A DNA stretch of 63,998 bases, filler included, from Intoshia linei (lineage: Eukaryota > Animalia > Orthonectida): the NCBI GenBank assembly GCA_001642005.1. It is 7 parts of 7 records of this genome, joined end to end, with 100 filler letters (N's around TTAATTAATTAA, not from the genome) between each part and the next. Parts side by side here need not be neighbours in the genome. Positions count along the whole stretch, not along the records: positions 1 to 23,088 come from LWCA01000570.1; 6 more parts are not named here. One strand, written 5' to 3'. Of the stretch, positions 1-23,088 are shown one piece after another. Each line of letters begins with the position of its first letter. Position 1 is the stretch's first letter. The notes beneath the pieces were generated by a model, which saw nothing but the letters and a program-made list of their open reading frames with translations, did no database searches and was not told where the DNA came from. The position numbers were made by a program, and so were the translations under genes.

Positions 1-200
1 CATATATTCAAATAATTTTATACTTAAATTATAATGTATTGAGTGTTTAACATTTTTTATATAACTGTAAAATAATTTCCCGTTCATACATCATTGTGGT
101 TCAATTATAGGTATAAATAATTTTTTTTAAATTTAGTTTAACACTCTAAAATTTTTAAAATAATAATGTCAATGTAATGTCTTTATATATATATATTTAG

Positions 201-606
201 CTTTACCGCCAGGTAAATTATTTTTAAAGACTTAAAATAAACTTTAAATTTTAGTTCAACCTAGTAAACTATTTTAAACAATACACATAAAAATAATAAC
301 AATATTTGTACATAAATACATGTAAAAAATATTAAAATTATTTATAAATTTAGCTCTAGTGCCAAGTAAATTATTTTTGTTCCTTAAAATTGATAAAAAA
401 TAAAAACTAAATGTATTTTAAATTAGCGGCCCCACGTAAAAACATTAATATAAAAATTATCTCTAAAATGTAAAATAATGTATAATTTCTATATCTAGCC
501 GTACCTCCAAGTAATTATTTTAAAAAGTTTTCAATTGGTAAAAAATGAATATTTTTTTTATCAGATAATTAAAAATGTTAAATTATTTTAAAAGTAGCTC
601 CACCAC
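201..606 (+). CDS. Putative micro-exon gene segment encoding a Pro/Thr-rich peptide (six exons alternating 12 and 9 nt)
   Basis: TAG|exon|GTAA units at 201-212, 255-263, 354-365, 427-435, 499-510 and 598-606, separated by 42-90 nt AT-rich introns. Joined in phase 1 they read xLPPVQPTLVPTAPPVPPTPP with no stop. The exons are C-rich islands in near-pure AT sequence. Confidence 0.7.
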
Positions 607-811
607 GTAAAAATTTATTTACAGTGAACGATAGTACGTTCAGACTAGTGTTTCAATATCGGTAAATTATTACCCGTAATTATTTTCAGTTACCGTAAAT
701 TTGAAAAAAATTTGATTCTTATAATAAAACGTTTATTTTTTACTACGTTTTTGAGATATTGATGCAGTGTTAATGTTGAATTAAGTAAGAGTTAATTAAG
801 TCGTTCTACAC

Positions 812-1839: not shown

Positions 1840-3838
1840 ATCAATCGGTACAACAACCTGTTATGTCTAGTAATTTTTTTAAAATGTAAAGTTAAAATTA
1901 TTTCAATCAATCTATTTTATAAATTAAGATTGTCAACATTTCTGAAGTAAAACTTGAGTGAATATAATAGACTAAGCTCTAACCCAAATTTTTATTAATA
2001 TTATTTTATCTTTTGAAAGCGTTTTGGAAATCTATCATTCACAGAAAAAATATACTAATTGCCTAATTAATTTCATATATTAATACTAAAATAAATTAAT
2101 ACAATTTAATACAATGATCTTCAATTTAAGATTAAAATTAAACAATTAATTTGAAAAATTTATTAATACTCATAATTATAGTGTCACAAAATGGATATCA
2201 ACCGCAATATCAGCATCAAAGTATATTATATAATATATATTATAACTAGGTGATTGTTATGAACTACATACAAACAATCTAGCACTACCGAGGGCACATT
2301 TTTATTCTAAGAAAAAAATAAATATAAGAAATGCTACTGAGTTAAAAATCTGAGATAACTGCATTAAATGTAAATTTTTTTAAAATTCTAGGATTAAATT
2401 TTATTTTCATTTTATGAAAAGAGTATTTTGTGGTTTTGGCCCCTAATTTAGGGGCCCTAAGGTATTTTTTTTTAAATTTAAATTTATGACAATGTTCATG
2501 ATTTTAAAATCTGTATCAAATTGTATATTATTTTAAATTTTAGGACTCGTCTGATTTAAAACAAAAAAAAAGGAAAATAATTGAAGGGTTTTGACCTGTA
2601 AGATGTGTTTTTGAGATTGAAATTTATTTTACTTTCACCTCCGCAAAAAACTTTAATAGAAATGTAAAATTTTTTAAATTTTAAGACTATTATTTATTTA
2701 TTTATTGAAATAAACGATAACATAACATACATACAAAGAGTTTTATATAAGTTAGGATATACAGACATTATTCACTTAGCTTACTTCCGCTATAACAAAA
2801 AAATAAAAAATTTGCCAATTTTCTTAACCAACTCATGTTTAAGTTGACTTGAATATATATATTTCATAAACTGCAATAGTAGAAATGATATATTTTTTAA
2901 TTATAGATTAACAAATGATGCAACCTGGATATAGTCCAAATAAGTTATTTTAAATTAAAGTTTAATTTTAGATTATCAAGGAATTAATACAGACGTACTA
3001 GAAACTGAAAATTCAGAGACGAAAGGTTAGTTTTTATATATTAGAACTTTATCATAACTTTAGATAACGAGAATTGTAATTTAATTATCTTATATATCAA
3101 TATAAACTGTAATAGTTTTTTCCAACCTCTTTTTATGGTAAGCCCACTAACATTCTTAAAACATCCCTTAACTTCAAAAAATAATTTAGCAACAAATTAA
3201 ACTAATTATTCTTTATATTTTTTATTATTCTTTTTTTCAGTGAATTTTAATTGATTATCAAAAATAGGATACTAGTATAAATAAATACTAACTTAGTATA
3301 ATTATTACTCTTTGAATAAAAAATTTTCAAGTTCAAAATGCTAAAATATTTTTCTATAAGATATAAAAAGTCAGATTTTATAGGTCTAAAAAAAACTTGC
3401 CTAACTAATCATACATGATATAGTGCCAGGCGGCAACCAGTGATTCTTTGAGTAAATATGTAAATTATTTATTTTTTAAGTTTTAAATATTTTATACTAT
3501 AATTGACTCATTATAATCATTTTAATACTGAATTTTCAGACTCTGGATTTTATTTTGTTGAATATATTAGAACCTTTTCAACTCAGTTAAAACTGAAATG
3601 TATTATGTGTAAATTTTCAAAAACGGGGTCGTATAATTTTTTGGTATAAAAAAGTGACCCACGATATGCAAAAGGTTGCTGACCCCTGATATAGTGTATA
3701 ACTAATTTTTTTTGATTTTTTAGACAACGAAAATTTGAGTAAATATTATTTATATGTAGTTTAACTTTGAAAGGTACACGACCCTACATAAGAATTTTTG
3801 CCATTTCTGTAAATGATTTTCTATTTTTTTCGAATTAA
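1840..3838 (+). CDS. Putative micro-exon gene segment encoding a Gln/Asn/Glu-rich peptide
   Basis: AG/GT-bounded exons 1840-1869 (30 nt), 2182-2220 (39), 2972-3025 (54), 3064-3075 (12), 3724-3738 (15) and a terminal exon 3774-3838. Internal exons are all multiples of 3. The phase-1 join reads xQSVQQPVMSMSQNGYQPQYQHQNYQGINTDVLETENSETKDNENYNENLSTRPYIRIFAISVNDFLFFSN*. Confidence 0.55.
2246..2757 (-). mobile_element. Non-autonomous Helitron-like element, internally deleted copy
   Basis: On the minus strand it begins A|TCCTAACTTATATAAA and ends ...ACCTAG|T. Both ends match the copies at 27459-28262 and 50746-51916. Confidence 0.65.
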
Positions 3839-4959
3839 TAAATGTGGTGCCAAAACTGTAATCACAATTTTATTTATCAAAAATTAATGTTACATTTCGT
3901 GTATTCCTTCCCTCCCTACTACACTATATCTTACCATTTATACGGTTAAAATCTCTTAATCCACCTGTTTTTGAATATCCATTATTTTCATTTCTTCATA
4001 AATTTAACTGGTAAAGTACTAGGTAATAAATATAAATACATCATAAATTAAAAAATATAGTTAAATGTAGCATTTACAATTTTTAGATCTTAGTAGTATA
4101 AAATCTTTAAAAAAATATTTCTAAATTTGAAAAATAAAGGTAAATATTTAAATGTAAATCAAATAAATGAAATAATAAAATATATTTTTTTGATGAGAAT
4201 TTTAAAGATACATCCTTTTAAATTATTATAAACTGTTATTTCAACATCATGCAACATTTTCATAAAATCTCCCATATACATAATGTATATAATTAGTTAA
4301 TAAACATTAATGTAACAATATTTCTAGAAGTCAAACGTAAATATTTATATTTATGTTAACAAATAATATAACAATATACTCAAATCTGGTGATACTAATC
4401 CAGCGAATCTACTGTACATAACATATTTTTAATTAGTTAATTTTACATTATTAATTTACATTTTAAAAATATTATTGCATCATAATTAAGTGACTTATAT
4501 ACTTTTAATCTAGATACGATACCAAGTAATTATTCAAATTAAGTAAAAAAAGCTAATTTAAATGTAGATAAATATCTCTTAATCATTTTGCTTCCGGTAT
4601 CCATTGTTCTGTGTTTATTAATTTTCATATCAATTTTAATTTGTGTGATTCGAATAAAAAGAAAAAATCGACTTAGAAGAGTAAAACGTATATCACGAAA
4701 GATTTAATTAGCAAGTTAATAAAAATATTATATTTATTCTTTGATATTGAATGGTAAATTAAAATAAAGTACATTTTTTAATTACAAAATAAATACAATA
4801 TAAATTTGTATAATTTAATTTAAAATTGAAAATCACCAATCGGTAAACTACAATAAAAAGATTAACATATCTCAAATTAAAATAGATCAGTTTCCCAAGT
4901 TGTAATCCCAACGTGTTTCATTTTTATGTGGGCGATGAGATAATTTAAATTTGTTCAAA

Positions 4960-7900
4960 TTAAAAATTGGAAAACATTGATGTTAATAAAAATAATAAAT
5001 GTAAATATACTTCAAAATATTTGGTCAAATAAGGACATTCTTCAGGGCTCGGACCATCTCTATTTCCACTATAACAATCCGAAATTACCTATTTTAAACG
5101 AATATATAAGCATAGTTTAATGTATTAATATAGTGAGCATTTTTGATCGTGACAAGATATTGAAATCGACTCATAAACTTTTACATAAACTCCAAAAATT
5201 GCATAATAACGTAAAATACACAAAATTTAAATAAAAAAAATAAAAAATGTTACAAATTCCCAGATTATTGTTTCCTAAGATCAATTAATAATGTAATTAT
5301 TATTAAAAACGTCAGTTATTTCCATACAATAGATACTACCATTCTAAAAATTGTTACTAGTGTAGGTGACGCTGAAAAGTTTCCATTCCATGAAAAAAAA
5401 TTATACATTCCATAATGTCGCGATCAGAATGTAGACAAACCACTTGGTTGCATCACTCCTACTTTGAGAAACTACTGAGTTAATATATACCAAACACATG
5501 GAACAAGGAAATGCAGACATGCTATATTTGTAAAATTCTTTAGTTTTATAAACATGGATAAAATTGAATTTGTCATAATCACTTTCAATTTTTCCTTTTT
5601 TATGTCTTCGTCTAATTGTACCATCATGATATAGTCGATTCAACAACAAACTAACTTCTTGATCAAGAATTTTAACTTTAACTAGTTGTAACGCATTCAA
5701 ATATGTAGTAATTTCTTGTAAAGTGCACATAGACATTCGTTCTCGTTCTCTGGTGTTCTCTGTTTTTGACATGGATTGTATGTACTAAGATTGTATAAAT
5801 TAAATCGTAATAATTAAAAATACTTTTCTTTTAAAGTATGCTTCAACAGATTTTTGAGCAGCATCAACAAAATCTGTATCAATTTCTCCATTTGTATACC
5901 AGATGTTTCCTCTAACTTTCTCACATGGAACTACATCGTTCATAAAAAGCAATTCTTTACCAGTATCCTAAAATATAACATTATATTCAGAATATATTTG
6001 TATATTACAATGTTTCCAACATATTTAGGGTTTCACCTTAATAAAAAAAGGTCATTTATCAAACTTTACTGAAATTAATGTGACTTAAATAACTTAATTA
6101 GACGTGGGGCTTAACAATAATGTAATACAGGATAACTTCACATCACATATAAAGCAAATTTGAATAAATTCAAATAAAAGTCATACCTTCCAATTTAAAG
6201 CAATTAGATTACATATAAAACCTATGTAATTTGGTGTTTTTAAGGATTTGTTCCAGTTTTTTGAAAATTAAATTTAACATTTTAATTGACTAGGTTATTT
6301 CATACACAATCTAGACTCATTAATCTGAAAAAATCATACAAAGTAACTTCATAAAAATGCCAAATTTTGTACTATCTTGATACCTTTAAAAAAATGTTGA
6401 CAGTGTAGTTTTTGGTGTTTAATGTTCCCTATCATTTTACCATAGTTAATCCCCATTTGACGGATATTAATTTTAAAAGATTACAGCACAAGTAATGTAT
6501 TTTATAACATTATGATCAATAAGCTTTTTGATAGAGTTTTTAAATACTACAGTAAGAATACTTGTTTCTTTGCGAACATTTTTGTACAATATTCCTAAAA
6601 AATGGAATATAAATACAACCTATACATCGGTTAATAAAGTTTCAATTTTTTCACACAATAGTACCCTTACTATAAACAAAATGAGGGGTGAATCAACTAT
6701 CATACATATGTTTTTTAAATATGACGGTTACAAGTAGTACGAAATTTTGCAAGGATCACAAATAATATATAAACAACAAAAAAATTAACAGATAGTAAGT
6801 AAATATGTCCTACATCGAACACTTATTTTTAAGTACAATTGAATTCGTCCATTTCCATTTTCCAATCTCAAATAGATACATTAATCATTATAGCCTGTAA
6901 GGGTCGCATTCTTCTGTTCTTACCCTCCGCATCCGTCCACATTTTTCAACAACGGAATACACCAGAGTTCCCATAAAACTGGTAAAAAGTAATACAAAAT
7001 ACACATTTATTATTTACTTATACAGTAATACCTCACTTAACAAACGTTTTAACCTCTAACGTCTAAGCCTTAGCGAACTGTTAAATAATAAATATTCAAT
7101 AATCAACTCCAAAATTGTTTAAAAAAATTGATCTGATAATTATTCCAGGCTGTATAGTTTAAAAACTTCAACTCACAAATGTGACCATTTCCATTGTAAC
7201 ATTGTAACAAAAGATACATAAAAATTTCCAAGCATCCATTAAGAAATACAATCATACAGTCTTAATCAAAAATTTCATTTTTGATTATTTAAATTTTAAA
7301 AATCCATCTACACTTCAAATAAGTAGAGCTAGTCGGCAGAGCTAGCTAATGTTTTTACATAGTATATACTAATCAATCCATAATATAATTTATAAAAAAT
7401 ATGTTTACCTTGATCATTAGCATCACGAATAACATTGACTATATTTTGTTCGTTTATATCAAAATTACTATCTCTACAAATTTAAAAAATTAATTTTAGT
7501 CTATCCAATTTTTAGGAATAAAATGTTTCATATAAATTAAATTTTAAGATAATTTTATTAAAAGTTAGTTCTCTTTTGTCATATTTACTTATGTCTGTCA
7601 GGTCGTAAATTATTCAGTATCTAAAGCTTAGATTCTAAGCCTATAATTAAAAAAAATCGTATCTACATCTTTATGTCAAAAAACGTCTATTACAGTTTTT
7701 TCCGGGGTGAAAGTAAAATAAATTTTAACCTCTGAAACTCACACTTTACTAGTCAAAAACCCATATCTTTTTTTGAAAATCAAACGAGTTCGAAAATTAA
7801 AAAAAATTACATTCTGATACAGATTATAAAATTATAAATATTATTAATGAAAAAAATTCGGAAGGAATGAATTATATAGATTTTCACCCATATTTCTTTA

Positions 7901-9690
7901 TTGTAAATTTGTAGAGTGATATGTAGAGTGTAGACGTTCAATGCATATTTTTTTTGAAATTTTAGGATCAATATTTACATTTTCAATTTATCAAAATATT
8001 TGAAAAATAATGGTTAAAAATGTATTAAAATGTATTTTGCAACCGGAATACGTAGATTTCTGGTGTTAAAATTGTGTATTTATATCAACTGGAATAAGCT
8101 TTATCAGAATAATCTATTTTTTTTAATTTTCGGACTGTTAATTATTTCACATATTTTGTTTTACATGTTTACACGTTAATAAAATATTTCGGAAAAAAAT
8201 ATATGAATACTAAAGTGATTTGTTGACCGTGAAAGCTATGACACTTATTCAGATTGAAATTTTATGTGTGTGTTAACAGGATACAACTGTACCACCTCTA
8301 ATTTTTTGAAATTCTAGGGCTGTTTTCATTAAAAAAAGGGGTCATTTTGGGTTTTGGCTGTGAAGATATATTTTTTTAAATTCTCGAACTCGTTTGATTT
8401 TCAAAAAAATGACAATTGGGCTTTTTGACCCGTAAAATGTGAATTTGGGAAATTGAAATTTATTTTGCTAACACCCCAGGAAAAACAGTAATTGAAATGT
8501 AAACTTTATAAAATTCTAAGACTGGTAGTTATTGAAATAAACAATAATACACACAAACAAAGCATATTATATAAGTAAGGATATAGAAGTTTAATAACAT
8601 TGTAATGTAAATGTTTACCAAACATTTTTTACAGGTTAATAAATCTAGAATTCTATCACTTGTAAAATTTTGATTATATTAATATTTTTTTTAATTGCAG
8701 ACATCAAATATAATTTAACATAAACTCAGTTATGCATTTTTATATTATTTCAAATTTAAATCACACTCTGAGTTTCAAAGCAGGTAATATATTAGAACAT
8801 AGACGAACATAGTAAACATTATGTATTCAATATTATTTTAAAATTGAAAGTTTTTTAAATTTAAGTCATAAAAATAGATAAGGAAACGCCCGCATTTGGC
8901 AAAGTCAGCTGCTGTTTCTACGCAGTACATAACAGACAAGCTAGTAATAATAATTTAAATTTAAATCTAATCATAATTAAAACATACACTGGTGGCTTGT
9001 ACGCGTATAACAATTTTTTTCCTCGTTTTTTCAGTTCAATTTTTTTCTAAATTTAGTATGGATAAAATTAAATAACACCAACATAAAAAATGCATCAAAT
9101 ATAATTAAAAATACTAACCTCAGATAATAAAGTATTTAAAGCTTGTAGAATTTGTTCTTTACTAAAGTCAACAGTAGCCAAATTTATCTTTTTAATATCT
9201 ATTCCAAATTTGGATTTTCGACAAGCTGCAACAACTCTAGAATAATTAAAAAATAGGATATAAATATATATACAGTATTCTTTCCACAACTCCCCAACTC
9301 TATAACTCGCCATTAATTTAAAATATAAAGAAAAGTTTTAAAACCATTTGTCAAAATAAGTTATTTTGTATAAAATTTTACAATTTGTATTACAATTTAC
9401 ATTTTATTGCAATTTAACCTTTAATTTAAAGGTTTTATCTAGTGTTTCTATAGTTTTAAATTCTCTATCTCACCAACTATTTCTAAGTCCCAAATATGGT
9501 GAGTTATAGAGAGAATACTGTATAAAAATAATAGAAAAACATTTGCAAAAATGTTAATTTACATATTTTTTATATCGTAGTCATCCGATTTAAATCTTTT
9601 TGCATCAGGTTTAATTTTTTGGTCATCAAATAAATGTTTTTCAATAGTAGATCCAAAAATGTTGACAGTTTTTTGATCAACTGGGTCCAT
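4960..9690 (-). CDS. POLR3F: DNA-directed RNA polymerase III subunit RPC6 (C34/C39)
   Basis: Phase-consistent exons 9690-9563, 9236-9119, 9046-8988, 7473-7409, 6594-6485, 5967-5824, 5784-5491 and 5088-(5011 or 4960). Peptides DANDQGILYKNVRKET, RGNIWYTNGEIDTDFVD, LLNRLYHDG and the C-terminal Fe-S motif PCSMCLVISDC...PEECPYL match the RPC34 family. Confidence 0.9.
7690..8581. mobile_element. Helitron-like family fragments in a POLR3F intron
   Basis: Shares blocks (ttacagtttttccggg, cattgaacgtctacac, ttctaagactggtagttatt) with other copies. The minus-strand 5' end TCCTTACTTATATAA is at 8581. Confidence 0.6.
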
Positions 9691-10411
9691 ATTAAATGTT
9701 GTTTCTATGTTGAGTAGTTAATATGTTGCTGTAATGAAAGTATAATTTTACATTATCAATTTTCTTTATATTTAGGTCTATTTTTACATTTTTACGTTCA
9801 TTCAGTTTTCACAAGCATATATTAAACGTTCACTTAATTCTAGAAATTTAAATAAATACAATTCAGAATTAACTTTATTTTTACGAAAAAATAAAACACA
9901 ATTACATTTTGTATTTTGTGTTATTTTCTACTAAATATTTTATTTTATTCAAGTTCGGAACTCAAAATTATCCATGCTTTCGATTTGTAAACTTTGAAAT
10001 TAATTTATGAATTATATAGGTAAAGGATCCCCAATTATATTGCTGTTGAATGGTATTTTGAAATTTAAAAAAACTTAAGAAAAAAATCTCCATGTCAACA
10101 TATTGAGAATTTTATTGACTCATTTACTTGTAGTGATTTACTAGTAGTGAATAACTGAATAAATAATGTATTTGAACTATTTAGTGCAGTGCGTATGCAA
10201 TTCATTCTATGCAGTTGAAAAAACTGAAAGAGTTTAAGTATACGTATTAAAAACGTTTGGATTATGTTTATTTTTATCCAAATTAATATGCAATTTGGAT
10301 ATAATTAATTAATTAAATATAATCTTTTAAATTTCGGAGTCTAACCGAAAAATGAAATAAGTTGTAATAAACATCATTAGGAAATCATTAAATGAAAATT
10401 AGAAGTAAGAA

Positions 10412-13400
10412 ATGAAAAGATGTGTCGAGTTTTCGGCCAAAATTGACATTGAAGATGACAATGTACGAGTTTACAGTAAATATGGGATTATTAAATATGT
10501 GTCATATTCATTTGAAACAAAGTTAAACTATTTAATAGAATCGCATTATGTATATTTGTATAAATATATTTCTAAAAAAACTGTACAAGGCTTAATTTGT
10601 TGTGCAATAAATTTAAATTCGTTAAAAATTGTGATCTATCCAATCTTTAATAATAAATATTTACTTTTATTTTAATTGGAAAATAGGAACAGAAATGAAT
10701 TCTGCCTCTATAGATAAATCGAACAGAATAGATGGTATTATCCATTTACAGTGTAACAGTACATACATTTAGATTTGATTAATACTTTCCTAAATGACAC
10801 AAAATCTTACAAAAATAAAAATTCTAAAGTTATGAAGTCTATGAGTGACAATTTTTTTGATAATGTTAAATTTCAACCTAATCCACAGAAATCAAGTTTT
10901 GCACCCAATCCGTACTTCAAACCGAATATTAGCAACGATGTAATATTATTGAAAATATTAATACAACATGAATGGCCAAGTGTAATGATTTAACTCTTTC
11001 ACTGTCTGATGCAATTTTATATACTATCACCACACGTCTGTAATTTATGTTTTAATTTAAACTTTAATTATTTTTAAATTACCAATGAGAAAATGTATAA
11101 AAATAAAAGAATAGTTTTTCAAAATTATGTTGTATATATCATAGAATACACAAACGTGTAAAGTGAAATTGCTGTGTATAGTATAGAATACACAGACAGT
11201 GAAAGGGTGAAAGGTTTAGAGAGCGCACTCCTTAAACTGGTTCTAAGTTTTTTTTAGGAGACGTTACATATTTTTTGGTATATATCAAGTTTTTGCTAAT
11301 CATGTGCACAAAATGTGGTGGTATTGAGAGGTCTGACTGTATGTTTAAATGTATTCCATTAAACATTATGTACCCACTTCAAAATTAATTTTGTGTAAAG
11401 AGTTTAAAAAACAATTTAGTAATGCGATTTTTTTATTTTTTATAAAATTCTAAGACTTTTTTCATTTAAAAAAAGGGTAATTTGATGTTTTGACATGTAA
11501 TTTTTAATTGACAATTTTTAATATATTATCAACCAATATTTTTCAAATATTACGATTATAATAAAAATTGAAAATGTAAATATTGATCCTACAATTTCAA
11601 AAAAAATGTGCATTGAACGTCTACACATTTCTAACAAAGAAATATGGTGAAAATTTATATAATTTATTCCTTCGCAATTTTTAAATCTCAAATTCTCATT
11701 TCCAAACCATTTTGTTAAAAATTTAACATGTAAATTAAAATTAGAACAACGATTACTAAATTCTATTTTTAATTCTATTTATTACAATCCTTTGCAATAT
11801 TGGTTAAATTCACCTGAAATATGTTTATAAAATGCTGATTCCGTTAACTATTGATACATAATTGGTATTTTTAAGTATTTATTAAATTGGTACTGAATAT
11901 ATATTTTCACATTCAAAATGACAAAATAGGTTTTTATAATTTTATTTATTCTGGAATTTATGCTATTTATGACAATTTTTTAAAATTTGACTGTTTTTAC
12001 TATATTTTTCAATCAATTTTATGACGATGATTATAATCACGTTTGTTTTTATAACGATTAATTTAATAAACTTTTTTTTTATCATGATATTTTTTATCAC
12101 TATTCGTTTTTATCACGATTTTAATTAAACTGAAATTAAAAATAAAAAATTAATAGAAATAACAGAATTAAATAAATAATTTTGTGATATTACATTTTAA
12201 TAATAAATTAACTAATGGTAAATAGCAAAATAGTTAACATTTAAAGATAAAGCATGTATAGTTCTCATTATTTCTGTGTGATTCAACATTATTCTTTTTA
12301 TATGAAACTTTAATTTCATAATGCAATCTTTTGTAAGGCTATTCTCCAGCTATTGCCTTAATGTATATACCACGTTGGAACTCATGTTCTTCCTTGAGTT
12401 TTCCAATGAGCTTCCAGACAATAGGATGAATCAATTAAAATCAATCTTCCAATGAACAAAACCATAGACTCATATAAAATATCATTCTCTAATCCATTTA
12501 ATATTCCATCTCAAGTTTCGTGATTAATCCCCACTGGGGATGCCCAGCTTAAATTCTTGGCTTGAGCAATTTATTAAAACATAAATAAATGGAAAGTAGT
12601 CTAGCATAGCTAGAATACTGAAAATATCAATTAATAAACGTATATTTAAATCATTACATGATGATGTGTGACATGTTGATGAAAGATTTAATGCGATATT
12701 ATTAATTTTAATGATAATTTTGATAAAAACGACGTTTATTAAATTAATCGTGATAAAAACTAACATGATTATAATAATCGTGTTTAAAAATATGTGCACC
12801 GATATGATGGTCCACCTGAAACAAATTTGGGAACCACTCTGTAGTATTTGATACGAATTCAGATTTAATGTAAAAACACTTTAAGAGTGATAATATATTA
12901 TATAACTGATTGATGTAAATAAAGGTGACAATCACACTTTATTACACACTCCTTTAAAGGATTGATAATAGTGCATAGTAAGATTTTTAAGTTAGATTTT
13001 CAACGTGAATTTATTTTTTAGTTTAAATTTAAGTATAATAAAAAGTGCCCTTCGCAGAGCTAGGTCCTGTTTGTTCGTAGTACATAACGGACAACCTAGT
13101 ACTTCTATAATATTCTATATTATATGGTAGCACTATTTTAAATGATAATTTTTATTGAAAAATTTTCCAAAAATTGGGTGATAAAGTGCGTTTTTTTTTT
13201 GAACCAAACTTTTAAGAGTGGTTTTTAAGAATTTTTTTGTGAACCAAACTTTTAAGGGGGGTTTTTAGGTAGTTTTTTTTGAACTAAAATTTCAAGAGAA
13301 GTGAAAAATTTTATACCTACCAATTGAACGATAATTGATATCAATATAGAAACAGCATTACACTAACAAAACAAAGTAATTAAGCAGTGTATTTTAAACC

Positions 13401-16400
13401 AGATTAGGTTAAATAACAGCGTGCAAAATGAAGGAAGTTGTGTATTATTATAAGCCAAAATTAATTTACGTCACATTTCAGTCTGCAAAATGAATGAAAT
13501 TTACATTATTATAAGCCAAAATATATACTATACGAAAAGAAATTTGAGTTTATTTTATAAATTTTTAGATTTTGAATTTTTTGTATTTTTAGTATGATTT
13601 TATATTTTTATCGTTTTTAAACCCGTTTAAAAGTTTGGTTTAAAAATTATTTCCTAAAAACCCCCCTTGAAAATTTGGTTTAAAAAAAATCTTAAAAACC
13701 CCCTCTTAAAGTTTGGTTCAAAAAAAATTACTAAAACCCAAAATTAAACTAAAATATAAATGAAGTTTTACACATTCTACGACTTATCCATGAATTGTAT
13801 ACATTCTACGACTTGCCCATAGAATGTGTACATTTCACAGTTTTACACATTCTATACGACATATACAAAGTAAGTAAGCATCATTAATAGTATAATAATA
13901 AGATAATTATCAAATAAAGAAATGAAAACTGTAAATCTTAGCAGTTTAGTAATTGAATTTTAGACAAATAATTACACAATGCATTACAAGACCTATGAAA
14001 ATGAAATAAACCTTGCCCCAAACTATGCAAACTCAGAAGTAGGTAGTTTCATTAATTCTTCACAAACATACGATGTGTCAATGTATAGTAAAGAATATAT
14101 ACCCAAAAATGCGCAATCTAAATTAGATGAAAATTTTTACAGAAATTATAAAAAAGAAAAAATATTGTACAACGATTCTAATAGTATGCCACGAAATTGG
14201 AACGAACAAATGATTTATCCAAATAAATGCAATAATATATACGACGATACACTCATTTCAATGTATGGTTGTGACTATGATAATTTTGCGTCTGTTCCAA
14301 ATGGGATCGCTTTAGAAAACGTGCCAATGAATGATGTTTATCGTGATTCACAACCGACTAATTCTAAAAATTTTTACATGCAACAAAACTCTAATTTTCT
14401 TAAAAACACTGATAATAATGTGTCACCCATTTTTAGTGTAAATAATTCTCGAGATGACAGTTTCAATGTATATAACCGAAACGTAAATACGGATGAATCA
14501 ACCCACAAAGCTAATAGAATGAACAATAGTACAGATCAAAGTACTGGTAAAATGTCTGTTTTGAGCCCAATATATCATGAATATAAATATAAAAAGGGTA
14601 AGAGAACTAGCAATCATAATGTCATTGAAAAAAGATATCGCATGAGTATCAACGATAAAATAATGGAATTGAAACAAATATTAACATCTGAATCTGAATT
14701 GCGGGTCTCTAAGGCTATGATTCTAAAATTGGCAATTGCAAGAATTAAACACTTGCAAAGTATAAACCGAGAACTAAATTTGGAAAATAAAAAATTAAAA
14801 CAGGCAATTTATTGCAATGGATATGTCACACCTGCTTTGAATACTGATGATTTTCAAACTAATATGGCGGGAAACGGGCATAGTGAAAATGCTCCGTTCG
14901 GTTTAAATTTGAAGGAGAGTACTGAACATGTCACATGCAATTATCCAGATTCTTCACCAATTATGCGCTCCAAGGCGAAACAAAAGATCAATATTACGCA
15001 CCCGAGAACGAATGTGTATGCATTTATACTGCTGTGTGCACTATTTTCCTTTAATCCTTGTTCAGTGATATCAAGTACATTTTCTTGGTATCCAATATTT
15101 GGAAAAATGGAAACAAAGTCAATCCAAACACGCACAAATGTTCCTAGTCGTGTTTTATTTTCTGTTAATAATAATCCCAGTATAGATGAATCGATAATGG
15201 TAGTTAATTCTTCTGCTTTCAGTGTATTTTATATCGTATTTTTTTGGGGTTTTGGATGGATGATCAATTTTGTCATTATGATGATTTTATTTAAGTTTTT
15301 TTTTTTTTTACCACGTCAAAAACTATTATCTGAAAAAGATTCATCGACAACTGAAAAATTGAAAAAAAGCGGACCTGCCTGGGAAAAAGAAGAATGGGAT
15401 CAATTGCACAAGGATTTTGATTTACTTTCAAAAAAACTAGAATTTGGTCACCTGGAAAGCATTTCAAATATTAAGAAAAAGTTTAATCAAAAAAATGAAC
15501 AAGAATATGAATCTTGTAATACAAATACTGCTGATGAAAATTCTAAAATTCGCAATAAAACACTTCAAAGCATTATGGCACACTTCGAACAATATGATAC
15601 AATAAAATTTGTCGAAAACATTGGCTTTTTAAAAATTTCCTTTGCTCTTTTTATTCAAATAATTTTTTACATTTTCAATTTTTTTCTCAATCCCTACATA
15701 ATGATGAATCGGGTATTCACTACTCCCGATTATTTGAAGATTGCTTATTTATATGATCGTATGTTGCAAATTTGTTTCCACGAAATTTGTACCACTGAAC
15801 CCAAAAAACGCCGTAAACACTTGAATATTTTAAGCTTGTATTTCGCTTTTTCTTCTTTGAATGCTGTGAAAAACGTAAAAACAAAAAATTATTTGGATCA
15901 AAAAATTGCAATTTACTTTAATGCTTCTATTATTTGTCGACTAGTTTGTCCTGACTGGATAAAGAAAATTATGCATCGTTATTTTTGTAGGCGTGCCATG
16001 CGGTTATATTACAAGTTAAATAAACCGCACGATACATTTCATTGGCTGAAACATCCATTGGGAAACAAATTTTTTTTTTCAGATGAAGGCAAACATGCAT
16101 TGAGCAACTCATTCAAATGGCACGACTTTAACTTGTCTCGCCAACAGTTCACATTTGACCCATTGATTAAATTCAAACAACATTTTGTATGCTGGCTTTT
16201 CAATAATGCATTAATTAACTCACCAAAAAATTTGGAATATCCTACTACAACCAATTTTCCTAGACCCGAAGACACAATGACTCCATTGATGTATCTAGGG
16301 AATATTAAAAATGTTTGCAGTCGAAGGGACGATTATGAAATTGTAGAGTTTTGGTGGTGTTCTTATATTGAATTGTCTGCGAGGTGGCCTTTTTGCAACA

Positions 16401-18259
16401 ATGAAAAAATGAAAAGAATGACTTACAGTTACAAATATATACAAAAATCTACTGGAAATGAAAATTTCTTACCTTTAATGAATGTTTCTATTCTGTTATA
16501 TTTCTCTGGACAAATTGTTATTAATTTCGACAATGCCAATTTAAATCATTTACAAGATTGTATTCATTCAATAAGGGAACAATTTTATATTATTGTCACA
16601 AAATTTTTTAATTTTTCTGATACGTGCAATATCATCCTGTTTAAATTTTTCGATTGGTTGATAATTTGTAAGTTCAAAGCTTTAAGTTATTATCAAGATC
16701 ACAACGAGGTATATGCCATTTCTGTGGCCAAGAATATTGAAAAAGATATTGCCGTTATGTCAACTATATGTCTCCGTTTACACCATTCCATTAAATCTGA
16801 TTTAGAAACCAAAGTATTATAATTATTTCATTTAATTATATTTTTATAGATCAAACTTCACAAAACAATGCTTCTGATTTTAAAAAGAGTTAATCTAGTC
16901 ATTTTATTGGATCAGGTTAAATGAGTTGATAAATTTGAGAAACAAAAAATTGGTATTTATTATATTCATATTTTAATATATAAAATATGTACATTGTACA
17001 ATAGGTACTAGTAGGGTTTTTATGATTCTTGATTCTATCCATTGTTTAACTTTTTTTTAGTCTCACACCGCTCAAGTAAAAAAATTTTTCCCTATCATAA
17101 AAAAATTTACTCTAGCATCACCAATTAAATTAGAATGGTAGTCCTGTCATTATATGGAGCTCGTCATAGGACTTTAGTCTTTGAAGATCTAAGACCTTGG
17201 ATTGCATAGTTTTATTCATATTATGATATTATTAAATTTATTTGAAAAATATGCGTCCCTTGTACCACTTTAGAGATCCCTAATTTGAATGTAATAAATA
17301 GTGTGGACCATTTTCTGTGCTGTAACATGGGCGCAATAAATTATACCAACGGAGTGATAATGGGTTTAGAACATGGGTGTCAATTATGCGACCCACGGGA
17401 CATTTACATCCCTAGTGGTGGACTGTGCGAGCCGTGATATAATATACATTTTTATTTTTATAGCAATTTTTTACTTAATATTACCATTTTTATTGTTTCT
17501 TATTTTATTTTATGAATTAAAATTATTATAAATTAATTAAAACTGTTAGTTTTAACATAATTTTTTAGTAAAGATATTTTTTGTGTATCCCGTAGAATAA
17601 TTTTTTTTGCACATTTGACCCCGAAGCAATTTGAGTCTGACACCCCTGGTTTAGAGTTTTAACTTTAGACTCTAGAGCAGTGATTCCCAATTGGGTCCTT
17701 GGACTCCTAGGTCAGTGATGGCAAAAATATGACACACGTGTCACTAGTACCACGCACTCGGACTCTGCCTGACACGCTGGTAAAAAGCTTATTTGAAATT
17801 TTTAATATGTTGTGGAAAAATTAAATCAAAAGTGTGTAATAATAGAAAAGTATATCTAAAATTATTTATCATTTAAAAAAGAACACGCAACTAGAAAAGA
17901 AAACAGCAAAATTTTTCTATAACACGCTAACTAAAATTTCTTGCCATTACTGCCCTTGAGGAGTAAACTTTTGATATTCAAATTTTTTCTATGGATCAAG
18001 TGAAATAGACTGTATCACCATAATTTTAACTAAAATGAAAAAAATACCATTGCACTCCAATGTAATTTTGAATACTATTATATATATACTTACATACATT
18101 CATTTTCTATTATTTGATATATATACATGTATTATTTTAGCTCAAAATTGTATACAGGTTTCTTTTTTGTTTCAATATTCACAACGTCAACAAGATTCAA
18201 ACATATCTTATTTTTCATCATTGAAACAAACAGTATCCTCCATTCTCAAAGTCAAATAA
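10412..18259 (+). CDS. SREBF: Sterol regulatory element-binding protein (membrane-bound bHLH-Zip transcription factor)
   Basis: bHLH HNVIEKRYRMSINDKI carries the SREBP-diagnostic Tyr. TM1 has the NP motif (ALFSFNP), followed by luminal RVLF (S1P-type site), TM2 and the C-terminal regulatory domain. Exons: (10412-10475 tentative), 10687/10695-10734, 10773-10939, 13964-16813, 16850-16924 (TGA) or to 16952, and possibly 18141-18259. Confidence 0.9.
10994..11207. mobile_element. piggyBac-like MITE
   Basis: TTAA|CTCTTTCACTGTCTG ... CAGACAGTGAAAGGG|TGAA: terminal inverted repeats with a degenerate TTAA target. Confidence 0.6.
11500..13099 (+). mobile_element. Helitron-like family copy, interrupted by the MULE, with an intact 3' end
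   Basis: Colinear with 27150-28262; ends ctgtttgttcgtagtacataacggacaacCTAG|T. Confidence 0.6.
12024..12782 (-). mobile_element. Non-autonomous Mutator-like element with a transposase remnant
   Basis: About 65-bp imperfect inverted repeats at 12024-12090 and 12712-12782. The internal minus-strand peptide HPIVWKLIGKLKEEHEFQRGIYIKAIAGE* resembles MULE transposase C-termini. Confidence 0.6.
13171..13745. mobile_element. Foldback-type element with inverted arrays of ~40-bp subterminal repeats
   Basis: The left arm has three tttttgaaccaaacttttaagrgggg-type units. The right arm has their reverse complements (ccccctcttaaagtttggttcaaaaa). Confidence 0.6.
17372..17648. mobile_element. hAT (Charlie/Buster-like) MITE; related copy at 57348-57660
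   Basis: TIRs CATGGGTGTCA / TGACACCCCTG; TSD gtttagaa / gtttagag. Confidence 0.7.
17713..17952. mobile_element. hAT MITE with CAGTGATGGCAA termini
   Basis: CAGTGATGGCAA ... TTGCCATTACTG; same terminus as the element at 60719-61303. Confidence 0.55.
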
Positions 18260-18821: not shown

Positions 18822-19519
18822 ATGAGTTTTTCAATTTATTCAAAAAAGATTTTTTTGTTAATATTACTGATGGGGTATGTTAATGTAAATTCAATGCAGC
18901 ATGTACAAGAATATAGCGATTATTTTAATTATAAAATATGTGGAATATCTTATAAAAATATACACAAAAATATGATGAAGTTGGATACAAATGAGATAGA
19001 GAAAATTCATCAAAATTATATACTTGATAATGTAGAATTGATCATCTATGGAAGGGTATTATTGCCTCCAATATTCAATCTAATTTAATTTCCTATTGAA
19101 TCATTAATGAAATTGATATTGTATGATAGTTTTAGTAATGACTACTTTTATACGATAAGAGCTTACACATTACTTATCGATATATTGTTTTTTTGGTTTA
19201 TTATACCATTAGTATTTTATGTAGATGACAGAGTTCATGCAGGGTTCTATCAAACTGAATATTTTTCTAAATGGGACACTATGGAAAAAAATTTAAATAT
19301 AGTATAATAATGTGCACATGTATGTATGGCATCTCGGAACTAATGTGCCATAATTGTCCATTTTACAAAAAAATGTTAATTTTAACAATTATTGGAGTTA
19401 ATGATATTATTCAAACAATTTGTGATGAATTCAGTGTTCATTATATCTATAAAGATCATCATATATACAGTAATTTATCACGTGGACAGCATTTGATATC
19501 ACATTGTTCCAGAATCTAA
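18822..19519 (+). pseudogene. Decayed intronless ORF with a signal-peptide-like N-terminus, family unknown
   Basis: Three consecutive ORFs: 18822-19088 and 19107-19307 in the same frame across one stop, and 19271-19519 frameshifted. The N-terminus KKIFLLILLMGYVNVNS is hydrophobic. Confidence 0.35.
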
Positions 19520-20534
19520 AGTCTCCAGTAGCTGTTTTAGTTTGTTTGTACGTTATAAATAAACTAATTTATTTATTTTAACCAAATACTGGATAATATT
19601 TTTTAATGTTGAAGTCGTTAAATTTGTAAAATTTATTTTTTTGGCCCTCATTCGCCATGTGTTTATACCAGCCTGTTCAATATCATAAATTCAAACCAAC
19701 AATTAGATCCAAACCTAGCGTACTTCGAACTCCTCTTATCTTTAATTTTGTAAAATGGTGGCTTGTTATTTCAAATTGACCATTTAAAAAAATTATTTAC
19801 AATTTAGTGAAAAGGGTTCTTCATTTTCATTGGTTTATATGAGAACATCAATTTATGATCAATATGAAATCTGTATTTTCGAAGTGTACACTGTACAGTT
19901 GTTTTTTGTTGAAATAGAATTTAATTCCAACAATTGAAAAGAATGTGTATTTTAATTATAATTGGTAGAAAATTAAATTTAAATTAATTTATTGAGAATT
20001 TTGCATCTTAAAATTTTTTTTATCAAATTACAATATTTATGAGATTGTTTTACGGTGTCATTAGTATAATAATTAAATAGTTAGTATGAAAAAATTTTTT
20101 TAGGATAAATTTTAGATTAAAAATCTAAAAATTAGCATATAATATTCTCTTAATAACTCGCTAATTCTGTATTTCGCCAAATGATTATTACTTAAATGAA
20201 TAAGACAAGTCTTATAGGGGCAATGGAAAATTAATAATAAAAATAATACTAAACAAAAAAGGGGTCGACGTAGTTTATAAATCTATAATTTTAACTAAAT
20301 CGTTGATGTACAATTGGGTGTCACATTTTTTTGAAAATTTTAGAATTCGATGGGCAATTAGCACTAAAACTATGTATTTTTAAAATAGAAAAACTAATTC
20401 CCAATCAAAAACATTTAACGTTATCTATTAGAGTTGTGTTTGTCATTTTAAATGTCACATTAAAAATATTATTGAGAAATTAAAACTGAACTTTATTTTA
20501 ACGTAAATTGGCGGTTGAACTTTTAAACGTGGTA

Positions 20535-20855
20535 CAGTCGGACCTCGGATTGGGCACCATTTTTTGAAAAGTGCCTCAAAATCAAAAGTTTTAGTAAGTT
20601 ATCTAATTTTTCATTGAATATTCAAACTATTGCAATATATTATGATGTTATATTTGTCATTTTGACATTTGACATATTATATCAATATATCTCTATAGGA
20701 ACTATACTTATATATTTTATATTTACAACATTTTTGCCCAAAAAGCGGGGTTAATTTCACATATATTGCTATGGCATCGATCTAAATACTATAAAATTAA
20801 CATAATTCTGAAAAAGTGCCCCAAAAACCGAGTATGCCCCAAAGCTGAGTCACTG
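20535..20855. mobile_element. pogo/Tigger-like MITE inserted at TA
   Basis: TA|CAGT...ACTG|TA. It splits a repeat whose uninterrupted inverse (tcggTAccac) is at about 18472. Confidence 0.7.
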
Positions 20856-21388
20856 TACCGACTTTATAATATTGTTCTCCATGTTTAGTTATTTTTTAAA
20901 TTTTTTTCTAGCTCAATTTTTTTGGAATATATTAACGATTTAATTTATCGAATTCTGGCTACTTTATTTACATTATTTAAATTTGTTTCAATTTGAATTT
21001 CAAAGTGAAATTTGAATGAGTGAAAAGTTAATTTACGTTATTTTGGTAGCAAATACTTTATTTTAGTAGCTCATACTTTATTTTTGTAGTAAATACTTTA
21101 TTTTACAGTGGATGTCACCTACATGGCTTATGTGAATAAAAGCTTCAAAACGGAGTTAAATCAAAATTTAAGAAATAGATAAATGTAGAAAACATTTCAT
21201 TCATCACAGCGCAAATATTTTAAATTCGAAATAATTAACGCATAACAACAAATACTAATAATTAAAAATAAAAATAACTAAAACCAATTAAATCAAAGCA
21301 AAATATAACTCGTTTCGAGATTGCTTGCTATTAAAAGTTATAAAAATTAGTTATAAGTTATAATATAGTTATTAGTTATAAATTTTAG

Positions 21389-22208
21389 CGGATTGTAAAT
21401 TATATTGCACATTAATTAATATTGACAGAAACTTTGTTTATTTTTATTAAAATTTTAAAATCTGTATATTTGTAAATGGTATCATTAATTTCAGGTAGTA
21501 ATTTATTATCAATATATGCAATATTTATATAGCTTACAATAAATTTTATTAATATTTATTATATAATTATAGAAGGTAAAAACTATTTTTATTTCTATTA
21601 AAATATTATTATTTAAATTTACATCATTAGGACGTAAACTTTATAAATTATAATTGTACATGTGACTTTTAATTTTATATATTTTATATTGATGCATTAT
21701 ATAATTATAATACATTATTACAATTTAGAAGGTAATAAAATGTATTAAATATGTTTTAAAATTTACAAATAATTGTATAAAAAATAATTTTCATTTATTA
21801 ACAGAGCGTAATTTTTAATTATTAAATTTCTATAATTAGTATACAATATATTTAAATATTAATTAGCAAGTAAAATATACAATATTTGTAGTAATTTTGT
21901 CAGCAATTGACTAATATACATAAAACTAAAATTAATTTCCTTATAACAAATAATTTTGATATAATATTAATGATTTTAAAATAGTTATAATTATTCTTAC
22001 AACTATTAGTAAATGTCAGTTTTAATCATTATAAATATATTAGACTGTAAAATTTAAAATATTTTTATATCGATCAATGTTAATAGTGGTCTATTAATAT
22101 GTCATTTTATAGTAGGTATATATAAATAAAAAAAATATAGATGTAATCTGAAACGTTGATAACAAATATTTTCTTTTTTTAGAAAGTAATATTAATATAA
22201 TATAGTGA
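21389..22208 (+). other. Array of candidate 3-nt micro-exons plus one 6-nt exon
   Basis: YAG|NNN|GTA at 21495, 21573, 21631, 21729, 21805, 21867, 22044, 22113, 22183 and 22206, plus YAG|CGGATT|GTAAAT at 21389. The phase-1 join is xDCKGQEPNLEM, stop-free. Confidence 0.6.
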
Positions 22209-23088
22209 GTAAGTTGTTAGTTGCAAAAGGTTGCTGAACCTTTAATTAGCGATTAATTAATCGTAACGGAATTTTTTTATAAAAATATACAAAAAATCTT
22301 TTTTACAATAAAATTTTCCATCTTAGTTATCATTGACATATTATATAAACAAAAAAAGCATTTAATGAAAAATCTTCATGTCTGTCATGAAGTCTATGCC
22401 AGTTAACACACTTCATCTTATCCCATTTAATCGTTGAAATTTGCGGATACAGTAGAAGCCGTTTATAGTAGGATCAGAGCAGTTTTGATCTTAGAATTTA
22501 GAATTGATGACTATAACCGACTTTATCATCTCTAATAATCGAATGAAATTTCATACATTTTGATCTACATGTACGTGAATTCTTCTTTTTGATCACTGCA
22601 AGCGACTTTTATTGTAGAATTATATTTTAAATACATTTGAAGTAATTTAAAAAAATACCATAGCTACATATCAAAAAAAGTAATATTTTTATTTTAACTC
22701 ATAAGTAAATAACCAGCCCGTTAACCTTATTATGTTTTTTAATGAGGTAATCCTTTATATTATAGTGCATTATAATTATTTTTAGAATTAGAAAAACAAT
22801 TACACTATATAAATTTGTTTTATTTAATTGTTAAACCAAATAAATAATTTAATTACAGGAATGTATGTGAATATCTAAAAATTTAATATTTAATAAATTT
22901 TTTGATTTTCAACATTTAGATAGCTAAAAAAATAATTTTTTAGTAAATTAATAGTTTAATCTAGTAATGAGTAGTACGAGATCAATTTTGGTGTAAATTT
23001 AAAAAATTCATGTTTTGCGTTCAGATACGATTGAATTTATACATATTTATTGAATACAAAATGCAGAAAATATATTATATCAAGTGTC

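Follow-up and report, generated by a model that had tools for sequence, protein, structure and literature searches.

Recursive splice sites, or ratchet points, lie within long non-coding stretches, where a 3′ splice site abuts a 5′ splice site and removal presumably proceeds stepwise, 5′ to 3′. In the micro-exon genes (MEGs) of schistosomes the exons are symmetric and 3-81 bp in length, and the introns are long, reaching 5 kb (10.1101/2023.06.21.545858). Aphid bicycle genes carry 5-25 micro-exons, long introns and paired CYC motifs (10.1101/2020.10.28.359562), and codon position 2 is where almost all of their internal exons begin (PMC9168663); the megacycle gene has more than 100 micro-exons (10.1101/2020.10.28.359562; PMC9168663). 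Single exons of 3 nucleotides (nt) occur in Drosophila hth and in human RPS24 and MAP4K5, and the spliceosome can include them (PMC7392893, PMC11162997, PMC8632122). In the literature searched we found no report of runs of 3-nt exons, nor of micro-exons in orthonectids. Here we describe an array of candidate 3-nt exons in the orthonectid Intoshia linei. The DNA analysed, called the window below, is a stretch of 63,998 nt, filler included, from assembly GCA_001642005.1. The array is part of contig C1321 (LWCA01000570.1, stretch positions 1 to 23,088), and positions are counted along the whole stretch. As judged from their sequences, the arrays of this class are most likely real tandem 3-nt coding exons, and would be an extreme form of micro-exon gene.

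Results

Eleven tiny units with splice signals

The array occupies 820 bases of AT-rich DNA on the + strand, in which eleven tiny units (one of 6 nt and ten of 3 nt) are flanked by normal splice signals. Every unit is preceded by YAG, mostly ttag, and GTA(A/T) follows directly. All eleven units of the original prediction were found at the coordinates that it had given:

21389-21394, + strand, 6-nt unit CGGATT, with acceptor ttag at 21385-21388 and donor gtaaat from 21395
21495-21497, + strand, 3-nt unit GTA (cag/GTA/gtaa), which could alternatively be read as a zero-length AG/GT site
21573-21575, + strand, 3-nt unit AAG
21631-21633, + strand, 3-nt unit GAC
21729-21731, + strand, 3-nt unit AAG
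21805-21807, + strand, 3-nt unit AGC
21867-21869, + strand, 3-nt unit CAA
22044-22046, + strand, 3-nt unit ACT, with the longest spacer (174 nt) just upstream
22113-22115, + strand, 3-nt unit TAG
22183-22185, + strand, 3-nt unit AAA, 20 nt ahead of the TGA unit
22206-22208, + strand, 3-nt unit TGA, with gtaagt after it; of the last five units it alone is found in both haplotypes

The spacers are, in array order, 100, 75, 55, 95, 73, 59, 174, 66, 67 and 20 nt long. The AAA and TGA units are probably alternatives that are not both used, because only 20 nt lie between them and the smallest array intron that we accepted is 41 nt; the earlier caveat about the length of the last spacer is therefore upheld.

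The motif YAG-Nk-GTA was counted on the + strand of positions 21300-22300. It occurs 10 times with k = 3, as against once with k = 2 and not at all with k = 4 or k = 5, and the minus strand of the same interval holds no YAG-N3-GTA. In 5000 dinucleotide-preserving shuffles of 21386-22215 (830 nt) the mean was 0.35 sites and the maximum 4, compared with the 10 observed, a number far beyond chance. G residues are scarce in this DNA (G+C is ~24% overall and 18% at the array), and 22 of the 73 in the 830-nt region, nearly one third, are the splice-site G of the eleven units. At the array, Tandem Repeats Finder reported only small low-complexity rows and no period matching the unit length, and a search of the whole assembly with the array found no second copy. 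It had been suggested that the units might prove to be a decayed tandem repeat or a transposable element (TE); with no unit-length period and a single copy, the array is neither. We conclude that the window array truly belongs to its class and is not random, although the copy may be damaged.

The class of arrays in the assembly

The assembly (41.6 Mb in 3520 contigs) was searched, and 233 kb around the pattern matches were fetched. When three units at intervals of 45-75 nt were required, the genome gave 12 matches, and the reversed control 0 and 1; with a two-unit pattern there were 21 matches, against 4 in the control. The matches are strongly biased to the contig forward strand (12 to 0, and 17 to 4), which could be an effect of the tool or a bias in the orientation of the assembly. 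The fetched DNA holds ~18 locus-strands with 8-39 strict units each, always on one strand, and the motifs in these loci are 40-140 nt apart.

The length of the units is sharply defined. In the 98.7 kb of the densest loci, YAG-N3-GTA(A/T) is found 298 times, whereas the other spacings from 0 to 30 give 12-34 each, except k = 6 with 40. TAG-N3-GTAA is found 208 times in the same DNA, against a background of 3.7. Of these spacings only k = 3, and weakly k = 6, rises above background, and the arrays have what broadly marks a micro-exon gene: very short exons, in multiples of 3 and in one phase. Of the units in excess, nearly all (~94%) are exactly 3 nt long and a few have 6 nt, so that every length is a multiple of three. 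Zero-length sites (k = 0) are at background, with 20 occurrences against the 298 for k = 3.

The largest arrays are those of C1697 (387-17721, 73 strict units) and C2698 (5155-40569, 76 strict units), and closely spaced runs reach 13-15 units. Dense runs also occur in C1593, at ~7091-8536 and ~9265-10529. Over the whole genome TTAG-N3-GTAA occurs 2404 times and TTAG-N4-GTAA 2220 times. Since ~132 of this excess of ~184 already lie inside the fetched DNA, our estimate is that only some 20-30 loci, with about half a percent of the genome between them, make up the class.

All-against-all BLAST and genome searches revealed that the arrays are single-copy and that their spacers are mutually unrelated. 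Gaps of more than ~250 nt between units mostly hold TEs, and the BLAST matches are limited to these TEs and do not extend to the spacers. Two array loci match each other at 90.6% in one place, but the shared sequence proved to be a TE and hence offered no test of conservation. ARAGORN found no tRNA or short interspersed element (SINE) cores in the GC-rich islands of the gaps. The gaps between clusters gave no consistent candidate for larger in-frame exons; one candidate of 165 nt is the start of a separate open reading frame (ORF), followed possibly by a transposase-like stretch. In C1017, at ~19490-20000 (L005 9491-10000), an ATG-started ORF of ~78 amino acids (aa) comes right after the end of an array, and then maybe a transposase-like stretch; this ORF probably belongs to a TE rather than to the array.

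A tandem duplication of 218 nt, with 99.6% identity between its copies, was observed in C1593 (7912-8358; L007 4913-5359). It doubles one 3-nt exon (CGA) together with its intron, and directly attests the growth of arrays by single modules.

Coding signature of the class

Junction codons were formed in each frame from 179 pairs of neighbouring strict units, 35-140 nt apart. In the frame in which a unit supplies codon positions 2 and 3 and the next position 1, none of the 179 junction codons is a stop. The expected number of stops is 10.5 ± 2.8 if the order of the units is shuffled across all loci, and 8.7 ± 2.5 (P about 2e-4) if it is shuffled within each locus. The other two frames have stops at chance level (21 of 266 and 13 of 180). 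When one unit is skipped, 5 of 94 junctions are stops (4.6 expected), and when two are skipped, 3 of 53 (2.6 expected), which is the random rate. The deficit is thus restricted to units that are physically adjacent, so that composition cannot account for it and the joining of neighbours in an open mRNA does.

In base frequencies, unit positions 1, 2 and 3 agree with codon positions 2, 3 and 1 of a 947-aa ORF near the window array. The agreement includes the scarcity of G at codon position 2 and the abundance of T at position 3 and of G at position 1. The residues implied for the class are rich in Leu, Ile, Ala and Phe, with Ala at 12% despite a genomic G+C of 24%, and neither Cys nor Trp occurs among the 179 junction codons. 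The peptide pieces obtained are 5-14 aa long. The original prediction of a gene built from codon-length exons is therefore only partly borne out: across the class, the stop-free junctions and the codon-like composition argue that such genes exist, but the window copy lacks a recognizable start exon and its own openness is not significant.

Putative introns of the arrays and introns of other genes

Introns of two HSP70 genes, placed between exon matches, start with gtaa(g/t), end with ttag and are 35-40 nt long. One contig from the sequencing runs described below skips exactly 18062-18140, an interval of 79 nt that begins with gtaa and ends with ttag. The array spacers carry the same signals as the HSP70 introns but exceed them in length (median 82 nt, range 41-140 nt). 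Among 130 array introns the mean fold z-score was 0.1, with 3% below -2, and no pair of C plus D boxes was found. Rfam gave no match above the gathering score.

Other identities were tried and rejected. A host of mirtrons or small nucleolar RNAs (snoRNAs) was discarded in view of the lack of excess structure and of box motifs, and a known RNA family in view of the Rfam result. A tandem repeat was set aside because Tandem Repeats Finder gave no unit-length period. A TE or paralogue was set aside because the array is single-copy and only its flanks match repeats. Recursive zero-length sites were rejected because k = 0 is at background.

Predicted peptide and candidate end exons of the window array

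In the window array the open frame is the one in which each unit starts at codon position 2. It is the only frame without a stop and the one chosen in the original prediction; the other two meet TAA or TAG. Joined in this frame, the units read (x)DCKGQEPNLE, with one Cys. An M would follow if both AAA and TGA were used, which is unlikely because of the 20 nt between them; if only one of the two is used, the reading after the joined units is E or V. The candidates for the two ends of the gene are as follows:

22250-22260, + strand, candidate terminal coding piece, of low confidence; it follows a 41-nt intron (22209-22249) ending in ttaattag, and with the carried A it reads A/CG ATT AAT TAA
19373-19469, + strand, the only phase-compatible candidate for a first exon, of very low confidence, with an ATG and a hydrophobic start, and with codon position 1 followed by a GTAA donor

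We would guess that the intron to 22250 appends TIN and then a stop. The upstream candidate would require an intron of 1919 nt that contains the TEs; it has zero depth in the three sequencing runs, no paralogue and no relative in the protein databases. It was the sole and weak outcome of the upstream scan, and the earlier statement that no start exon was identified still holds. Beyond the end of the contig, C286 (54-nt exact overlap, 23035-23088) contains no more units.

Two orphan ORFs of 88 and 82 aa were noted upstream, at 18822-19088 and 19271-19519 (+ strand), both with zero depth in the three runs and no Pfam match. The 88-aa ORF has a signal-peptide-like start, and the 82-aa ORF has no paralogue.

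Sequencing runs and haplotypes

Three runs of one study (X1-X3), of unrecorded type and holding 22-38% of the sampled words, were compared as contigs; such contigs drop short or rare paths. That one contig is spliced (18062-18140 skipped) and that depth is zero over 18900-19700 suggests that the runs are complementary DNA. Two intervals of the array region are distinguished by these contigs:

22192-22813, no strand assigned, stretch covered by contigs of all three runs (depth 27.7, 9.7 and 6.7), in which no ORF of at least 50 aa was found
21839-22191 (353 nt), no strand assigned, segment replaced by 14 nt in the other haplotype and carrying CAA, ACT, TAG and AAA (contig joint 21838>22192 in X1 and X2)

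The depth over the first of these resembles that of the neighbouring mRNA of the SREBP type. A 666-nt X1 contig runs colinearly from 22813 back to 22192, continues with 14 other letters, and then covers 21838 down to 21808; an X2 contig has the same joint. The array region is thus likely to be transcribed.

C2015 is a haplotig of 22235-23088, with 94-95% identity and indels of 3, 5 and 22 nt, so a second haplotype has been kept uncollapsed in the assembly. The variants of the X1 contig (22347 A>G, 5 nt deleted at 22492, 22680 G>A and 22694 T>C) are also those of C2015, from which it follows that the joint 21838>22192 is a difference between haplotypes and not a splice. In the haplotype without the 353-nt segment a well-formed GT..AG intron of 59 nt joins AGC to TGA, and four codons are gone, in frame.

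In addition, an X1 contig has 179 nt of unrelated, GC-richer sequence joined near an acceptor at 22785/22786, where depth reaches 76 (22784-22900). The joined sequence is absent from the window and from all fetched loci, and it may be a copy of a repeat or an exon of a gene assembled elsewhere. A loose contig end of 30 letters is absent from the window and the fetched loci, the only places checked.

Neighbouring genes and repeats

A single-ORF protein of 947 aa with a bHLH domain of the SREBP type is encoded at 13979-16822 (+), on the same strand as the array. Between this gene and the array lie the two orphan ORFs and then a block of TEs. A Pfam scan of the neighbouring ORFs gave nothing useful. 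The repeat closest to the array is:

21300-21345, no strand assigned, 3′ end of a dispersed repeat (TE), ending 40 nt upstream of the first unit; these 46 nt match at least 12 other contigs at 93-98% by BLAST

Further TE material was found at 20306-20992, with a nested insertion of ~320 nt (joints 20532/20856; high-depth divergent contigs), and at 21105-21240.

Run contigs suggest 3′ exons of the SREBP-like gene at 17881-18061 and from 18141 (within 17881-18253), with the 79-nt gtaa..ttag intron between them. Just 5′ of its ORF, tandem arrays of 38-40-nt units at 13192-13298 and 13630-13748 flank ~330 nt, and their consensus units look mutually reverse-complementary. A second micro-exon array, of another type, lies at 198-660 (+): six GC-rich units of 12, 9, 12, 9, 12 and 9 nt have ttag and gtaa flanks and are separated by spacers of 45-90 nt. 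In the same phase it gives the proline-rich peptide LPPVQPTLVPTAPPVPPTPP, and it extends past the start of the contig. Scattered candidates of 9-15 nt with ttag and gtaa flanks at 3064, 3724, 4328 and 4514 (3061-4525, +) may belong to a third micro-exon gene.

Discussion

We propose that the window array belongs, as one of the small members, to a class of micro-exon genes whose internal exons are, with few exceptions, exactly 3 nt long. Each spacer of ~40-140 nt would be an ordinary intron, starting with gtaa(a/t) and ending with ttag, and would be recognized by intron definition. The introns would be removed in turn, each removal adding 3 nt to the growing 5′ exon. All of them would be in phase 1, so that every exon provides codon positions 2 and 3 and the next position 1 of the translated product. 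Arrays may grow and shrink by whole exon-plus-intron modules and, because each module has the length of one codon and a single phase, its duplication or deletion never breaks the frame. Turnover of modules is seen in both directions, with a gain in the C1593 duplication and a loss in the four-unit indel of the window.

We think it probable that the window array is, or recently was, spliced and translated as a member of this class. The broader proposal is put forward with slightly less assurance, although we still favour it: that 20-30 loci with ~500 exons encode their products almost wholly in consecutive 3-nt exons with ~80-nt introns, with at least 73-76 strict units in some single loci and with gain and loss of modules.

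A number of observations weigh against these proposals. No transcript with spliced units turned up among the run contigs. One codon per 80-300 nt is a strange economy, and across gaps of more than 250 nt stops occur at near the random rate. Scans around the window array and the other arrays (27 clusters) found no start exon, signal peptide or firm terminal exon. In the window, depth is low across the array (X1: 1.6-4.7). Contigs, which cannot display 3-nt exons, are colinear (unspliced) through the TGA unit and its flanking introns, and the X1 contig is colinear across the candidate terminal acceptor at 22249/22250; this speaks against efficient splicing at both places. The peptide of the window copy is hydrophilic, while Ala, Leu, Ile and Phe abound in the class. 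Openness over ~11 codons has a probability of ~0.55 by chance and is not significant alone, so the case for function of the window copy rests on its intact signals and its membership of the class. Finally, TEs abut the 5′ end of the array and one haplotype lacks four of the eleven units, for which reasons the window copy may be decaying.

The explanation that survives best beside our own, though we judge it unlikely, accepts the class and regards the window copy as truncated: TE insertions would have cut off its 5′ exons, and the remainder would now be drifting. The TE that ends 40 nt upstream, with further TEs across 20306-21345, would fit such a history, as would the failure to find a start exon, the four units missing from the other haplotype, a last spacer too short at 20 nt, a composition unlike that of the class and the unspliced contigs at the 3′ end. 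However, all eleven units keep a consensus AG and GT in DNA of ~15% G+C, where G is quickly lost, and the frame of the class is the only one open. Moreover, after the haplotype deletion a well-formed intron of 59 nt remains and the reading frame is intact, as would be the case if a live gene had lost modules.

The original prediction had also envisaged a combinatorial device, in which skipping a single 3-nt exon would delete one residue and recode its neighbour. All exons are symmetric and in one phase, so any skip would keep the frame; variation of this kind is reported for the schistosome MEGs (10.1101/2023.06.21.545858; PMC10399815). AAA and TGA, at 20 nt from each other, also look mutually exclusive. 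No signature of such diversification could be detected, as the skip-one and skip-two junctions are not protected from stops whereas adjacent junctions have none. Selection is hence visible only for the isoform that includes all exons, and we consider this device improbable.

Slightly more doubtful still is that the arrays are spliced and not translated, as non-coding RNA or untranslated regions whose purpose lies in splicing or in the introns themselves (delay of expression, intron-derived RNAs or control of nonsense-mediated decay). The extremely low coding yield, and the failure to identify large, start or terminal exons, would be accounted for in this way. The avoidance of stops in one frame and at adjacent junctions only, together with the codon-like composition, would not, and the introns show no excess of structure, no C/D boxes and no Rfam match. 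Chance, a compositional artefact or a decayed tandem repeat or TE might be suspected from the AT-rich, low-complexity DNA and the TEs nearby, but is practically dismissed by the shuffles, by the empty N4, N5 and minus-strand counts, and by a single-copy array with no tandem period and unrelated spacers.

If real, the class of tandem 3-nt exons that we favour would mark the extreme limit of split genes, with one codon's worth per exon, dozens in succession. The spliceosome would routinely handle long runs of exons that are made only of the exonic halves of two splice sites. Models of exon recognition would be put to the test, since three bases serve both splice sites and leave no space for exonic enhancers or a junction complex. 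Gene finders and spliced aligners would be blind to a whole class of genes, and the arrays would provide a natural system in which proteins change by the in-frame gain and loss of single-codon modules. For the window itself the result is more modest: it holds a genuine member of the class, possibly in a damaged copy.

The class shares several traits with the systems described so far. Like schistosome MEGs, it has tandem symmetric micro-exons with lengths in multiples of 3, and exons of 3 bp are reported there too (10.1101/2023.06.21.545858); the likeness extends to hydrophobic predicted products (PMC10399815) and may extend to fast evolution and the lack of recognizable homologues. Unlike in MEGs, ~94% of the excess units are exactly 3 nt long and the introns have 40-140 nt, with none of the kilobase introns. 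Scans around the 27 clusters gave no consistent candidate for a signal-peptide first exon or a larger last exon. With the bicycle genes and megacycle it has in common the many micro-exons, internal exons that begin at codon position 2, and clusters of paralogues; it departs from the bicycle genes in its short introns, its 3-nt exons and the absence of paired CYC motifs (no Cys in the 179 junction codons). The 3-nt exons of hth, RPS24 and MAP4K5 are single exons in ordinary genes, whereas here runs reach 13-15 and a locus may hold 73-76. At ratchet points AG is directly followed by GT, with zero nt in between, and nothing of them stays in the mRNA, while in the arrays k = 3 is enriched and k = 0 is at background. 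As with introner elements, which are intron families derived from TEs, many introns are packed into particular genes, but introners are similar to one another and the spacers here share no detectable similarity.

We conclude that: i) the class differs from known micro-exon genes by its near-exclusive use of 3-nt exons, its short introns, its lack of Cys motifs and, apparently, its lack of a recognizable signal-peptide exon, and ii) if our interpretation is correct, it is a further case beside the schistosome MEGs and the aphid bicycle genes, with the phase of the latter, so that the origin of such genes could be compared across phyla.
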